Origin: Setoptus koraiensis
Lineage: Eukaryota; Animalia; Arthropoda
DNA: 64,000 nucleotides
Reading direction: 5' to 3'
Assembly (NCBI GenBank): GCA_048013815.1
Contig: CM106586.1
Location: forward strand, 15,190,001-15,254,000
The translations under genes were made by a program, and so were the position numbers. The notes under the pieces are model-generated. The model was not told the origin of the DNA, did no database searches, and saw only the letters and a program-made list of their open reading frames with translations. This document shows, one piece after another, positions 6,968 to 12,218 of the stretch; the stretch's first letter is position 1; each line of letters begins with the position of its first letter.

Positions 6968-8439
6968 TCAACTCGTTACTATCATATCTTCTTGATCATG
7001 ACAACTCAAGACGGTTCTGGGCATGATTTGAATATCACCAATGAGTTTGTCCAAAATATGGTCGAAATTGATTGTGTCCGTTGATACTGATGATTTCGGA
7101 TGCACTGTCAAAAATAGTTTCGGAAGTGCCATATTGCCGCATAATAAAGGGTAGAGAATATAATTTTGTGCGTGGTATCCCTTGGCTGGAATAGTCAGAT
7201 GAATCTGTTTTGAGTGAGGAGAGAAAGAGAGTGATTGTTAGATTGAAAGAAATGTATGCACTGTAGATACTCATTAAGGTCGATGTTTGGATTGTGGTTA
7301 CCTACCATTTTGCTACCACAGAACATAAAGAATTCGCTTTTCCCAATACTGATTTGCAGTCCCAAGTCTTCGTCTATCGCATTATTCAACTCCAATTTTA
7401 TTTCAAATGGCTGCCGACAGTTAACTCTCGTAGGGGCCTCAACCTTGAGGTCTAAAATAGAACTCTTAGATTCAGTATTGTGATTTAAGGACAATTTCTC
7501 AATAGCCCCAACAACGTTGGGCAATCTGAAATCGAGGCACCTATGAGCCTCGTAACGTGTCATTCGGTCGAATCTACCCCCTTCGTCAGGATGAGGAGTA
7601 ATGGGTTGTTCCATAATTCTTTCTAGTTTAAGGGAGAGAGACTTGGACAATTTGAGCCAACGTTCCGATTTATACATGGCAAGTGCACTACTGTAGATTG
7701 CATTGGCTTTCTGATGTTCGCCAGATTCAACGTATTCGTCTGCAACCATGACGCTAAGGAAATGTTCCATTCGAATACAATTCCATTCCTTGAAGTATTC
7801 AATGGCCGTGTGTAACAATAGTATGATTGCCTCGGAATAGTTTATAGGGTAATTTTGATCATACTGTTGTGAGATACCCAATGGATCCCCCATGATGGCT
7901 GGATTGTTCTGTTGGTTGGGCCAATTGAAATTTTGCGTCATTAGTTCATAGGGTGCATTCGAATTGAATGCTAATGATGATGAATTCATCATGACGTCCT
8001 TTATTAACGAAATGGCACCAGTTTGAGGAACGTTACAGGTTAGTTGTGATTCTAATTTGCGCTTTTTGATCATTTGAACAGCCGCGTCATAATAGTAGAA
8101 TCCTGGATGTTGGGTCTTGGACGCCTTCAATCCTGATGATATGGCCTGCCGAAATAGATCGGCGAACGTTTGATATTGTTGTGAGATCCAGGCAACGCGT
8201 TCAATCTCAAGATGAGTATCACAACATCTAATAGTTGTTTTGTTTATTTCATAGGAATCTATATGCTTTCTAAACTGTGCTATTGCATCGCGGGGTCGTT
8301 GTACCAGAAACTGTAGGCTCAAATAGCCTGGGTTCGAGGGGACGGCCTCCGGCGAGGGTCTGGACCTTGGGGCCGGCGCAACGACATTCTCCAAATCAGC
8401 TGGTATATCGATAATAATATCTGGATTTGTGGTTGTCAT
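6968..8439 (-). CDS. TRAPPC11: Trafficking protein particle complex subunit 11 (foie gras/gryzun), strongly shortened (~456 aa)
   Basis: Motifs DAIAQFRKHID, AWISQQYQTFADLF, QHPGFYYYDAA, FMFCGSK. Exon 8439-7306, intron 7305-7205 (GTAGGT...CAG), exon 7204-6968 reading IHLTIPAKGYHAQNYILYPLLCGNMALPKL (gryzun C-terminal-like). An in-frame GTG at 8508 is an alternative start. Confidence 0.85.
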
Positions 8440-9367
8440 GATTATCCGGTTGCTTGTTTGAGTTGTAACAAAATCAATCACCGTGGTGTTGTTTTCGCCA
8501 AAGAACAAAAATCTCTTACGTGTGGCGAATCTAACACTTGTTGTCGTAGTTCAAGTTCATACAAAATTTCAATTACTTGTTAGAATGACAAGACCAAATA
8601 TGGCGCTACTTCAGGTGGCCAAGTGTATATGTGTTTTATTTTTAATTATGCATTTCGCTCAATCACAGAATGCGGCACGACACCCTCTGCAGTGCATTTC
8701 TTCCTTACTAAATGCACCTATGCATATATAGGGTGCTCCAATCAGATATGCATATTCTACTAGTTATGCTGGCGTGCTTCTGGCAACACATTAGACAAAA
8801 TGCACTGCCCATGCCCGATAGGCACACAATGTACTTAAGTGGCCCTGTGCGCCGGGAACAGGGCACATGTTTTTGTGTGACGTAGCGCATCAGTCTCAGT
8901 GCACAAATAGCCAAAGTTTACATTCTGTGCTATCTTGCCGCACAATGCCTCCAGTCAGAGTGTGCGTTTGCTTGGGTCACACGAACATAAAATACTAGTC
9001 GGATATAAATAAATTTGTGCTGTCGACTGTATCTTACAAAGGACAACAAAGACCAAGTCAGTTGTTTGTCGCCGATTGCTTATCGCATTTTACAGACTGT
9101 GTACAATTTCTTACAGAATGCAGTTTTTTTCGTAGGACAAATTGCGTTGAGTCGGTGCATTTTCAGTGTGTTGTTAGTGTGTTTAGTGGTCTATTGACTC
9201 GGTGTTTACGCAGTGCCTACAACTAGACATACGGATAATTATGTCTTTCAGTTAGAATACGCACTCGATATGAAAGCGACGTGATATACAACATTCTCTT
9301 AAATTTAATTCAGTTCACAAGCACATAATCAATTATACAATTAGACAATTATTATTGAAGCTCCAAC

Positions 9368-9936
9368 ATGAATTCTAGCCAAGAGCCTAAGATTATAACC
9401 TTGGAAGAGGTTCAGGAGCACAAAAAGAAGTCGTCAGTTTGGTTTGTCATCCATGACAAAGTTTACGATGTAACGCAATTCCTTGATGAGGTAGGGCGAT
9501 TATTCCGACAAACATAAATAATTCATCATTTATTTTAATTGTTCAATTACAATTTCTCCATAACTGACTATGAGTCGAAGATATTCAATATATTGATCGT
9601 TATTTTTCTTCATGATATCCCTTATTTTAACTAATGTAGCACCCAGGAGGCGAAGAAGTCTTACTGGAACAGGCAGGAAAAGACGCCTCTGAAATATTTG
9701 AAGACGTTAGCCACTCGTCTGACGCAAGGGAACTCATGAAGACTTACGAGATAGGAGTGCTTCATGAGAAAGACCGAGCCAAGACAGCGAAGGTCCTGAA
9801 GAAAAACATCAAAGCCGTCGATGAAAAAGGTTCTAGGTACGACGATAACAATAAATCGCGGTTCAATTTCCAATGGTTGTTCTCATTAGCGGTGGCGGGT
9901 GCTGTTATGGTGTTATATAGAATATATGCTCATTGA
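9368..9936 (+). CDS. CYB5: Cytochrome b5, tail-anchored (139 aa)
   Basis: Exon 9368-9490 ([17 protein letters not shown]), intron 9491-9639, exon 9640-9936 ([30 protein letters not shown]) with a C-terminal hydrophobic anchor. Confidence 0.95.
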
Positions 9937-11294
9937 AGGACCAGACCAATTTGTTCCGGGGCGAATGAAGGACACTTCCAATTATATACATAATATTGCA
10001 AGTTTCCATCTCCAATACCAAACTTTAGTTCATCAAGGAATTGTTTGTTTTCCATGAGGTCAAGAGCGTTGAAAACGTCATAGCCGGTCTATGATTGATT
10101 AAAAATGAAATGTTAATATGACGAGTGATTACCGGTAAATAAACATTGAGAGTTTTCTCAAGAGATAACTTACGTTATTAGCCATAATTAGAGCGTCTTG
10201 AATCAACTCAACCAAAGTAATAGGCTTCGTTGTGAAATTATAGAAGGAGTAAGCCGCCCGAATACTTTTGTATGTGGGATGATTAATGACTGTTGAGGGC
10301 AAAGAGTAAAAACTGGTGAAGGCTAACACGCGTCCCTCTCGCTGTATAAAGTATTAAGACAAAATAAAAACATCAGTAAGCATTTAAAAATCCTGACATA
10401 ATCAAACATCTGTCACTTCTAAGTTGTATGTATACTAACCTCTACTACGTAGCTGTTGATAACATCATTTTTGGGTAAAAACCAGTGTTTAACTTCCTCT
10501 AAAGAGAACGTCGGTGCCAGATCAAACTTTTTCAAATAATCTAATAACATTTCGTGGACTTGTGGTACATGAGAGAGGTTCATTTGTTGGAGACCTTCTA
10601 ATTTAGGAGATTCGGGTAATTTGTACAATCTTAGTGTACGTTTCATGTTCATATTTCTAGTTATTGATGAGAATTTGACATCAACCAATTTCTTTGGGTT
10701 CAACGAACGATGATAATATCTGCATGTTCCGATGGGTTTTGGTAATATAACGCCCGCAGTGTAAATAGCTTGAAAGATGCCTTGCAGATTAACACGTCGA
10801 GTTATCTCTCTGATGAGCACCGGTGCCATTCTCTTGGAGCGTAATTTTTTGTGTACGCAGAGAAAATTTATTTCAACCATTTGAATATCCTCTTTGGTAG
10901 CAATGTGCATCCTAGCTGGAGTTGCCCCAATGAAGCCGACAAGTTTTTTAGACTTGCTAACACGAACACCACAATGCCAATCTTGTTGCCAACCGGGTGG
11001 TTGTAATGCCCATCTTAAAAACTGAGGCGAATAATCAAATCTAAACATGCAGTCGTCGTCTTCCACATAGTTCTCATTCAAGAGCGTATACAACTCTTTC
11101 AAGATATCATCGTTGCCTATATCGAGAGTATCCCAAGCGAAACCTTCTGGCAAATTGTAAGGTTCTTCGCGTAGCTCAACTATCTTCTTGATCGGTTCAC
11201 TGGTGTCGAAATTGTCGTCAAACCTGGGCACAGGTTGAGTTTCCCAGAATTGGTATCGTTTTTGGATTGCATCTTGAGTGGTTTTTGGTGACAT
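9930..11294 (-). CDS. NMT: Glycylpeptide N-tetradecanoyltransferase (N-myristoyltransferase), 393 aa
   Basis: [47 protein letters not shown]. Exons 11294-10440, 10341-10174 and 10088-9930; the last reads [37 protein letters not shown]...IGLVLQ*. Confidence 0.97.
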
Positions 11295-11822
11295 GTTACT
11301 GTTATTGTCATTTGATGCTGATTGGAATGAATACGATATACTAGCGTAGCTACGGCAATATTTTTCTAGTTGACATAAACCATATATTAAGCTGAAAAGT
11401 AGATTGTCTCGCCCTCAATTTATCAGAATATTGATCTCTTCGAAAGCCAAAATATTTCAAAGAAATCGCTTGTGCGTCCGTGCGTGTGTGTGTGTGTCTC
11501 CAGCAGCCGTATAGCACTGAATATTGCGTGCTGTGGTGATCGCCAATGAACGGCAAAAACCTCCCCTGGGGGAGGTAATGTCTCCCCAATACAGGGCGAA
11601 TCTCTCGTCCCTCCCGTCCCCCTCTAGCTCCTTCGACTTTTTATTGTTTGAACATAGCATGCTGCACATGTACAGAATGAGAACCGGGAATAACGGTTTA
11701 AACCTATCCCGCGGGCTAGCTTCTTCCGCATCTTCTTTCTCATCCCGTACAATGAGTAACATGTGGTATCTTCACTAGCATTACCGAGACACTGACGATA
11801 TCAAGAAACTATGTGTTTTTAG

Positions 11823-12218
11823 ATGGCTCGCGACAAAAAACAAACAGAGGAAAAAGTCATCGCTCTCGATGATCTCAAAGATCCTGAAGATATTAAGAAA
11901 CTATCAGTTCGTAATTTAAAGATATTATTAGATAAGAATTGTGTTGACTACAAGGGTATAATAGAAAAAGAAATGTTGCATGAGAAAGTTACTCAACTCT
12001 GGATTGATCATAATCAAAGTAGACCTGAAACTTCAATCGATGACTCGAAGGACCCTGAATACGATCAGATTTGTAAGATTTGTATGGAAAGGGAAATGGA
12101 CTGTGTTTTACTAGAATGTGGCCACTATTTCACATGTGTACAATGCGGTAGACAGCTTAGTGAATGTCCCATCTGTAGGCAATATGTCTCAAGGGTAGTT
12201 AGAATCTTCAGAGCTTAA
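11823..12218 (+). CDS. Partial inverted duplicate of the RNF34-like gene (SAP-like + RING, 131 aa)
   Basis: Near-identical to the reverse complement of about 1456-1830; intact ORF with its own ATG, stop and AATAAA at 12243-12248. Confidence 0.75.
   Translation: MARDKKQTEEKVIALDDLKDPEDIKKLSVRNLKILLDKNCVDYKGIIEKEMLHEKVTQLWIDHNQSRPETSIDDSKDPEYDQICKICMEREMDCVLLECGHYFTCVQCGRQLSECPICRQYVSRVVRIFRA

Follow-up and report, generated by a model that had tools for sequence, protein, structure and literature searches.

In the 64,000-nucleotide stretch of Setoptus koraiensis DNA analyzed here (the window), the genes for glycylpeptide N-myristoyltransferase (NMT) and cytochrome b5 (CYB5) lie tail to tail, and the spacer between them has been lost completely, in the very compact genome of a gall mite (eriophyoid). 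The two coding sequences overlap by 7 bp. We favor, with a probability of about 0.7, the explanation that this is a conserved housekeeping pair in which streamlining deleted the spacer until the two stop codons interleaved (TCATTGA), and that the introns of both genes are leftovers.

The gene models (Table 1) were established by profile and homology searches run exon by exon, with the joined CYB5 translation used for a frame check. The coordinates on the Pfam profiles are continuous over all exon junctions, for Cyt-b5 (PF00173) as well as for NMT_C (PF02799). Thus, the CDS overlap described by the first-pass annotation is real, and it is letter-identical in a contig of a sister species (L001). 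The positions given earlier for the overlap and for the poly(A) hexamers stand, but NMT exon 2 begins at 10341 and not at 10343.

Table 1. Coordinates of the NMT/CYB5 pair in the window, with the hexamers past the two stop codons and the conserved zone at the junction.
Feature	Position	Strand	Description
CYB5 exon 1	9368-9490	+	41 codons, ends ...FLDE; PF00173 profile positions 1-31, E=2e-10
CYB5 intron	9491-9639	+	149 nt, phase 0, GT..AG, between DE and HPGG
CYB5 exon 2	9640-9936	+	from the HPGG heme motif through the membrane anchor at the C-terminus; E=3e-12 over PF00173 profile positions 32-73; stop TGA 9934-9936
NMT exon 1	11294-10440	-	285 codons; PF01233, E=8e-75, and PF02799 positions 1-81
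NMT intron A	10439-10342	-	98 nt, phase 0, VVE/REG, GTTAGT..CAG
NMT exon 2	10341-10174	-	56 codons; PF02799 profile positions 84-142
NMT intron B	10173-10089	-	85 nt, phase 0, ANN/TGYD, GTAAGT..TAG
NMT exon 3	10088-9930	-	52 codons plus stop, ends ...IGLVLQ; PF02799 positions 144-198, E=8e-20
CDS overlap	9930-9936	both	TCATTGA; NMT stop reads TCA (9930-9932) on +, CYB5 stop TGA
AATGAA variant hexamer	9964-9969	+	28 nt past CYB5 stop; candidate proximal CYB5 signal
ATTAAA	10098-10103	+ (CYB5 sense)	within NMT intron B; not conserved
AATAAA	10138-10143	+ (CYB5 sense)	candidate distal poly(A) signal of CYB5, located in intron B of NMT
ATTAAA and AATAAA	9539-9534 and 9534-9529	- (NMT sense)	within CYB5 intron, 391-396 nt past NMT stop
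Hyper-conserved junction zone	~9841-10126		~97% identical to L001, with 8 differences over 286 nt

CYB5 is of the tail-anchored microsomal type. PF00173 scores above gathering in both exons, the HPGG motif opens exon 2, and both histidine ligands of the heme-binding domain are present. The C-terminus consists of a hydrophobic stretch plus 7 residues (the membrane anchor was called by eye from the translation), and the CYB5 proteins of relatives have an identical length past the anchor. Exon 1 is 97.6% identical to that of L001 at the amino-acid level. A third member of this lineage, P0121, has a CYB5 with 87% identity and the same ...YAH end.

The N- and C-terminal domains of NMT are complete, with 65-76% identity to arthropod NMTs. 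NMT proteins end in an invariant ...GLVLQ, the free carboxylate of which is catalytic. This C-terminus is present at the end of exon 3 and is common to all relatives and outgroups. It is barely conceivable that one of the two terminal exons goes unused, which would make the CDS overlap unreal, and we consider such an artefact close to refuted. Only these exons complete the Pfam profiles, exon 3 holds the sole downstream copy of the required NMT C-terminus, both terminal exons are 99-100% conserved at the protein level in L001, and RNA-type contigs cover both.

The overlap is a local outlier: among the 26 convergent ORF pairs (at least 150 codons) in the 264 kb on which our genome-wide statistics are based, no spacer is shorter than 157 nt. 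Given the shared coding nucleotides, transcript overlap is unavoidable, and NMT/CYB5 is a convergent overlapping (cis-natural antisense) pair in which the transcribed regions of opposite strands overlap.

The pair can be followed through the eriophyoid mites. The lineage of this genome and L001 (82.6% DNA identity, the same three introns and a spacer of -7 nt) branches early. Convergent NMT-CYB5 spacers in relatives measure 32 nt (L002), 38 nt (L005), 56 nt (L013), 60 nt (L008) and 125 nt (L006). On the P0018 contig, which like P0121 was compared by gene coordinates and proteins, the spacer is 2 nt and both genes are intronless. The adjacency of NMT and CYB5 is retained in most sampled eriophyoids and lost in two lineages (L010, L012). 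When metagenomes were scanned for CYB5 exon 2, no close relative was identified (best match 51%). In Aculops lycopersici, very small intergenic regions and intron loss on a massive scale have been described (PMC7738191), and eriophyoid gene order has been reported as poorly conserved (bioRxiv 10.64898/2026.08.24.746826).

The retention of this adjacency where gene order is otherwise poorly conserved would fit a scenario in which the overlap was selected as a regulatory device, with dsRNA (cis-natural antisense) or transcription collision limiting or coupling the expression of NMT and CYB5 and preserving the pair. The obligatory transcript overlap and the conservation of silent sites in the junction zone (below) are also consistent with this. 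However, spacers ranging from 125 to -7 nt, along with the two lineages that lack the adjacency, indicate that the extent of overlap is not constant, and genes with interlocked 3' ends would be hard to separate by rearrangement even with no regulatory role. We therefore regard selection for regulation as very unlikely.

Comparison with L001 revealed a hyper-conserved zone around the junction, the boundaries of which (Table 1), on which the 3' ends proposed below partly rest, were chosen after inspecting the data. The zone shows few differences in X2 (one of two RNA contig sets) too. In NMT exon 3, 49 of 52 third codon positions (94%) are identical to L001, compared with 262 of 341 (77%) in exons 1 and 2 (Fisher p=0.003). 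For the interval 9807-10088 the counts are 86/95, versus 336/437 in the background (p=0.002). Towards its 3' end, the CYB5 CDS likewise has unusually conserved synonymous sites. The neighbouring convergent pair GT61/TRAPPC11, which has a 422-nt spacer and served as a control, lacks terminal synonymous conservation. The conserved zone is probably the footprint of mutually overlapping 3'UTRs and their processing signals.

The first-pass annotation had observed that the first canonical hexamer (AATAAA or ATTAAA) past each stop falls within an intron of the partner gene, and the hexamers are indeed located there. It had further suggested that these are functional poly(A) signals and that selection on them as terminators keeps the introns. 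In the CYB5 sense, the AATAAA at 10138-10143 is intact in L001, where the flanking bases 10137 and 10144 both differ, and in X2; the probability of it remaining intact by chance is ~0.2. In the NMT sense, the ATTAAA is conserved in L001 and the adjoining AATAAA reads AATAAT there. CYB5 exon 2 is without any recognised variant hexamer in the NMT sense, a point in favor of the suggestion. Furthermore, in three relatives with spacers of 32-56 nt (L002, L005 and L013) the first CYB5-sense AATAAA is again in the last intron of NMT, and TTTATT is found in 8 of 8 independent introns, versus 2-5 of 8 for permutations of its letters.

Nevertheless, the placement of the hexamers is close to chance, and no better than it. 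In composition-matched shuffles of the introns, an antisense AATAAA or ATTAAA arises with a probability of 0.35 in intron B and 0.66 in the CYB5 intron (~0.23 jointly). Intron A also carries TTTATT, at 427 nt from the CYB5 stop. Of 14 AT-rich candidate introns at other places in the 264 kb, 6 have this hexamer too, a rough control because these are the AT-rich subset from a noisy pattern-based intron finder. No NMT-sense AATAAA or ATTAAA was identified within 600 nt in several relatives. Across 53 ORFs in the 264 kb, canonical hexamers are not enriched within 80 nt after stops (9 sense versus 7 antisense). An apparent post-stop enrichment of GAGTTT/GTTTTT in the same 264 kb was rejected as due to local repeats in a few ORFs. 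A further + strand AATAAA, at 9850, precedes the CYB5 stop codon and is part of the coding sequence.

RNA evidence comes from two low-depth contig sets, X1 and X2, both without strand information; two raw RNA runs, X10 and X13, yielded no reads of this organism. A spliced X2 contig skips exactly the 149 nt of the CYB5 intron, and another (10174-10332) begins at the boundary of NMT exon 2. An X1 contig (9642-10000) follows CYB5 exon 2 and continues 64 nt into NMT exon 3, ending 31 nt past the variant hexamer AATGAA, with no X1 coverage further on. The expectation that each 3'UTR is antisense to the terminal coding exon of the partner is thus borne out by this contig and by the CDS overlap. X2 contigs break at 9838-9864, where the depth rises from 2.2 to 3.4, coinciding with the left boundary of that zone of conservation. 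One X2 contig reaches 10180 and stays colinear across NMT intron B. It might represent unspliced NMT RNA or else an extended CYB5 3'UTR; the latter would favor the terminator idea for CYB5. CYB5 may use the AATAAA in intron B. No X2 contig lies over the CYB5 intron, which is cleanly spliced even though NMT exon 2 has greater depth. This speaks against the NMT 3'UTR extending as far as that intron, and conservation drops at ~9841, well short of it.

All positions of 3' ends given here were deduced from the points at which contigs end, coverage depth steps up and conservation falls off. Under spacer loss by streamlining, the 3'UTR of each gene and its cleavage and polyadenylation signals would lie within the terminal exon of the partner because no spacer is left, and a longer CYB5 isoform would have its signals in NMT intron B. 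For NMT, the most likely mRNA end is predicted near 9840-9865, some 65-90 nt beyond the stop codon, via a non-canonical signal. The CYB5 transcript would most probably end near 10000 (using AATGAA) and/or near 10160 (using the AATAAA of intron B). The resulting transcript overlap would be roughly 135-320 nt, and the double duty of the terminal exons would freeze their silent sites. The introns would be remnants in a lineage with fewer intron losses, rather than being held by the terminator of the partner.

All intron positions in the pair are ancestral, as judged by exact-block mapping. In Dinothrombium, CYB5 is interrupted by an intron at the matching site (LEE/HPGG), and Halotydeus NMT has introns at the sites of A (VVE/ESG) and B (AKH/ADYD). 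These positions, along with that of an NMT intron retained in some relatives (intron C), are all found in the outgroups Halotydeus and Dinothrombium. NMT exon 2 is the exact equivalent of Halotydeus exon 6, and NMT exon 1 is without introns where the corresponding Halotydeus stretch has four (Halotydeus exon map). Relatives of this lineage carry a different NMT intron or none, giving three NMT intron states among these mites. No intron-hosted RNA was identified: Rfam searches gave no match at E<=1, and the introns fold no better than shuffles (intron B z=-1.05).

Some features of the introns are compatible with retention as terminators. Intron B is 83.7% identical to L001 (the CYB5 intron, 76.5%), whereas intron A is only 52.9% identical. 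Every NMT intron retained in the eriophyoids is a 3' one, opposite to the trend reported for A. lycopersici, where it is the 5' introns that are retained (PMC7738191). The comparison of relatives does not bear the idea out, however. The P0018 relative, with a 2-nt spacer, lacks introns in both genes, and L008 is intronless at 60 nt. Introns are present at spacers of 32, 38, 56 and 125 nt, so that presence is uncorrelated with spacer length. Presence does not follow the neighbour either, since L012 keeps intron C, TTTATT included, where CYB5 is not adjacent. Conversely, intron C is the one closest to CYB5 and has been lost in the lineage of this genome. The CYB5 intron is the 5'-most of its gene, and thus of the kind that is usually retained. 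Although the AATAAA at 10138 is conserved, retention does not track the need for the partner's terminator. Together with the ancestral positions, the near-chance hexamers and the clean splicing of the CYB5 intron, this mixed retention makes it distinctly unlikely that terminating the partner is what keeps the introns in place.

A stronger combination is that the genes form an obligate interlocked unit, in which intron B is kept for a distal CYB5 poly(A) site, the 3'-most NMT introns (A and B here, C elsewhere) are kept for termination of the neighbour, and the antisense overlap couples expression and locks synteny. We consider this unlikely.

Spacer loss by streamlining, our preferred reading, makes this locus a clean and datable case of a spacer being exhausted (125, 60, 56, 38, 32, 2 and -7 nt). 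With no spacer remaining, the silent sites of the terminal exons are frozen, presumably because they double as the 3'UTR and processing signals of the neighbour. Intron loss in these mites is lineage-specific, as is apparent from the three intron states of NMT. Where gene order otherwise shuffles, interlocking of the 3' ends may be one factor that keeps a gene pair together. The locus reveals no new mechanism; it is ordinary but clean streamlining, and the idea that introns are retained to terminate the neighbouring gene does not hold up when relatives are compared.

In intron-poor genomes, functional introns can be retained, as with yeast introns that host snoRNAs or regulatory elements. The first-pass proposal was of this type, with introns persisting through a functional element that they carry. 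Unlike those of yeast, the introns here match no Rfam family and show no structured RNA, and their retention in relatives bears no consistent relation to the partner gene. Overlapping transcription also occurs in microsporidia. Arabidopsis SRO5/P5CDH is a nat-siRNA locus, and NMT/CYB5 resembles it in layout only, with convergent overlapping 3' ends and potential dsRNA. The closest likeness in kind is to the convergent overlapping (cis-natural antisense) pairs of compact genomes, in which the 3' ends of genes on opposite strands overlap through intergenic loss; in Floracarus perrepae, 369 overlapping gene pairs are annotated (bioRxiv 10.64898/2026.08.24.746826). As in such pairs generally, the 3'UTR of one gene is antisense to the other. 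Unlike them, the NMT/CYB5 overlap reaches into the coding sequences (7 bp, with interleaved stops), and it can be traced over a series of spacers from 125 to -7 nt, with a footprint at synonymous sites.

We read positions 8800-12200, translated the proposed exons and searched each exon separately against Pfam. The Cyt-b5 profile runs on across the exon junction of the cytochrome b5 gene (CYB5; profile positions 1-31, then 32-73), and the three exons of the convergent N-myristoyltransferase gene (NMT) cover the NMT_C profile (1-81, 84-142 and 144-198). The CYB5 stop is TGA at 9934-9936; that of NMT reads TCA at 9930-9932 on the + strand. Because profile coordinates resume at each exon junction, the stops interleave and the coding sequences share 9930-9936, confirming the overlap claimed in the first-pass annotation, of whose exon layout only the start of NMT exon 2 was amended (to 10341). 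The best named relative of NMT is that of the eriophyoid Aceria tosichella (70%), the closer matches (73-99%) being contigs from public runs. The genome, in two pieces, amounts to 48.8 Mb. In published eriophyoid genomes intergenic regions are tiny, ~75-84% of genes lack introns and overlapping gene pairs number in the hundreds (PMC7738191; bioRxiv 10.64898/2026.08.24.746826).

Features of the CYB5/NMT pair in the window, with identity to the sister-species contig L001, and intron C/microexon regions in relatives' contigs
Feature	Position	Strand	Basis	Identity to L001
CYB5 exon 1	9368-9490	+	translation, Pfam	78% (third codon positions)
CYB5 intron (GT..AG)	9491-9639	+	translation, Pfam	
CYB5 exon 2	9640-9936	+	translation, Pfam	81% (third codon positions)
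NMT exon 1	11294-10440	-	translation, Pfam	77% (third codon positions, exons 1+2)
NMT intron A	10439-10342	-	exon translation	
NMT exon 2	10341-10174	-	translation, Pfam	77% (third codon positions, exons 1+2)
NMT intron B	10173-10089	-	exon translation	
NMT exon 3	10088-9930	-	translation, Pfam	94% (49/52; third codon positions)
Conserved zone	9841-10126			97% (all positions; 8 differences in 286 nt)
Intron C/microexon	L002:1895-2055			
Intron C/microexon	L005:5180-5364			
Intron C/microexon	L006:5180-5359			
Intron C/microexon	L012:4186-4290			
Intron C/microexon	L013:4150-4262			
Intron C/microexon	L011:4768-4838			

The footprint of this arrangement was measured against L001, at third codon positions and at all positions of one zone. 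L001 is 82.6% identical to the window over 5.5 kb, with the same three introns and an overlap identical letter for letter. Third-position identity is higher in NMT exon 3 than in exons 1 and 2 (Fisher p=0.003), and the 97% zone takes in the final 96 nt of the CYB5 coding sequence, the whole of NMT exon 3 and 38 nt at the acceptor end of intron B. No such terminal excess was found in the adjacent convergent pair GT61/TRAPPC11 (422-nt spacer). On the simplest reading of this alignment, the junction bases would serve twice, as codons of one gene and as 3'UTR and processing signals of the other. A ~40-nt block in 9240-9292, 80-120 nt before the CYB5 start, is perfectly conserved in L001 (flanks 65-75%); it holds an ACGTG/CGTCA-like core and is probably a CYB5 core promoter or regulator site. 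A (CA/GT)n microsatellite (11470-11500), ~180 nt ahead of the NMT start, occupies the same place in L001.

Evidence from RNA comes from two low-depth contig sets, X1 and X2, whose contigs carry neither strand nor true ends, so that transcript ends are placed by inference. X2 is ~95-97% identical to the window and so represents a relative. One X2 contig splices out exactly 9491-9639; thus X2 holds RNA and the CYB5 intron is real. Another runs colinear from 9865 to 10180, through NMT exon 3 and then intron B, and a third begins precisely on the edge of NMT exon 2 (10174). X1 (99% identical) provides a single contig, 9642-10000, that represents CYB5 exon 2 plus 64 nt past the stop and none of the remainder of NMT. 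Therefore, CYB5 RNA extends at least 71 nt into NMT coding sequence; the contig ends 31 nt past a variant hexamer, AATGAA (9964-9969). X2 coverage argues against an NMT 3'UTR running on to the CYB5 intron, which is uncovered; the spliced contig shows no break at 9640, although depth is highest in NMT exon 2 (5.9 vs 2.2). An X2 contig break with a depth step at 9838-9864 falls where the conserved zone begins on its left and suggests an NMT 3' end there. Raw RNA-seq runs X10 and X13, which share their species label with three DNA data sets, contain no read of the locus in ~1.6 billion letters each; the label is probably that of the host or of a different organism.

The canonical hexamers lie where the first-pass annotation had put them, the first for each gene being in the partner's intron, and this placement is near chance. 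When each intron's letters were shuffled, an antisense AATAAA/ATTAAA arose in 35% (intron B) and 66% (CYB5 intron) of cases, with a joint P of ~0.23. The introns are T-rich on the sense strand, so TTTATT (AATAAA on the opposite strand) is common: intron A likewise carries it, 427 nt from the CYB5 stop, and among 14 AT-rich candidate introns from other parts of 264 kb, 6 do. After 53 long ORFs, canonical hexamers number 9 sense vs 7 antisense within 80 nt and 21 vs 25 within 300 nt, and are an unreliable guide in this genome. This lack of sense-strand excess was seen across window 1-64000 and G000:C2:15254001-15454000. For many clear genes, among them TRAPPC11 (7195), the next 200 nt contain no copy of any of 13 known hexamer variants; this mite may use an unusual or degenerate poly(A) signal.

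The annotation had also proposed that each intron is retained because it carries the partner's terminator, which predicts that intron presence tracks tight CYB5 spacing. The main eriophyoid clade, as sampled by contigs encoding NMT matches, keeps the convergent adjacency; CYB5 is not NMT's neighbour in L010 and L012. Introns A, B and that of CYB5 occur in the window and L001, a third NMT intron (C) alone in L002, L005, L006, L012 and L013, and none in L008, L010 and the P0018 contig; every main-clade CYB5 sampled lacks its intron. Retention does not follow spacing. Spacers are 32 (L002), 38 (L005), 56 (L013) and 125 nt (L006) with an intron but 60 (L008) and 2 nt (P0018 contig) without, neither gene having an intron at 2 nt. 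L012 retains intron C although CYB5 is not adjacent, intron C, the nearest to CYB5, was lost in the window's lineage, and the CYB5 intron is its gene's 5'-most, a class usually retained in these mites (PMC7738191). Some observations do favour the proposal. AATAAA at 10138 is preserved in both L001 and X2 though both flanking bases differ (chance P ~0.2), intron B is 84% identical to L001 vs 53% for intron A, and NMT's last intron likewise contains the first AATAAA in CYB5 sense in L002, L005 and L013. All 8 independent introns examined (window 10342-10439, 10089-10173 and 9491-9639; intron C of L002, L005, L006, L012 and L013) carry TTTATT, vs only 2-5 of 8 for its five letter permutations. 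All NMT introns kept in the group are 3' ones, opposite to the 5' retention reported for Aculops lycopersici (PMC7738191). With the comparative test failed and the hexamers near chance, we consider retention for the partner's terminator improbable.

TTTATT on the introns' own sense strand (11 of 11 if L001 is counted) is found also without a convergent partner nearby, and so may be characteristic of introns in these mites; some of the copies, several in number, coincide in part with branch-site motifs resembling TATTAAC/TACTAAC. A small RNA hosted in the introns is not supported, since no Rfam family matched at E<=1 and no intron folded better than its own shuffles.

All the introns occupy ancestral positions in outgroup genes (NMT in Halotydeus: A, VVE/ESG; B, AKH/ADYD; C, ASK/VGLVLQ; CYB5 in Dinothrombium: LEE/HPGG). 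Thus, those of the window are survivors in an early-branching lineage of the tree, not gains. Surviving NMT introns in any sampled eriophyoid (window 9930-11294; L002-L013) are among the three 3'-most ancestral ones; the four 5' introns of Halotydeus are lost in all. Intron C directly precedes a 21-nt terminal microexon (IGLVLQ + stop). Such a microexon (I/VGLVLQ + stop), after an ancient phase-0 intron, occurs in many eriophyoids and Halotydeus. Automatic gene calls run through intron C, giving false C-termini (...PEQVS...) in many database proteins (P0002, P0003, P0004, P0006, P0007, P0009 and others). Gene order around the pair differs: in the main clade (L002, L005, L006, L008 and L013) a large WD40/Tub gene (WDR35/TULP-like) is upstream of CYB5 and NMT is preceded by an F-box/LRR gene, places taken in the window (7195-9367 compared) by TRAPPC11 and a RING gene. 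The pair held together though flanks changed on both sides.

The antisense overlap might have a regulatory role, but varying spacers and adjacency lost in two lineages argue against a fixed requirement. Of the first proposal, the part that stands is that the genes are interlocked and that their transcripts must be mutually antisense, to which the present comparison adds a measurable evolutionary footprint; the introns' role as terminator carriers does not stand. We conclude that CYB5/NMT is a new and well-documented case of an already known phenomenon, the overlap of convergent genes where a genome has been streamlined.
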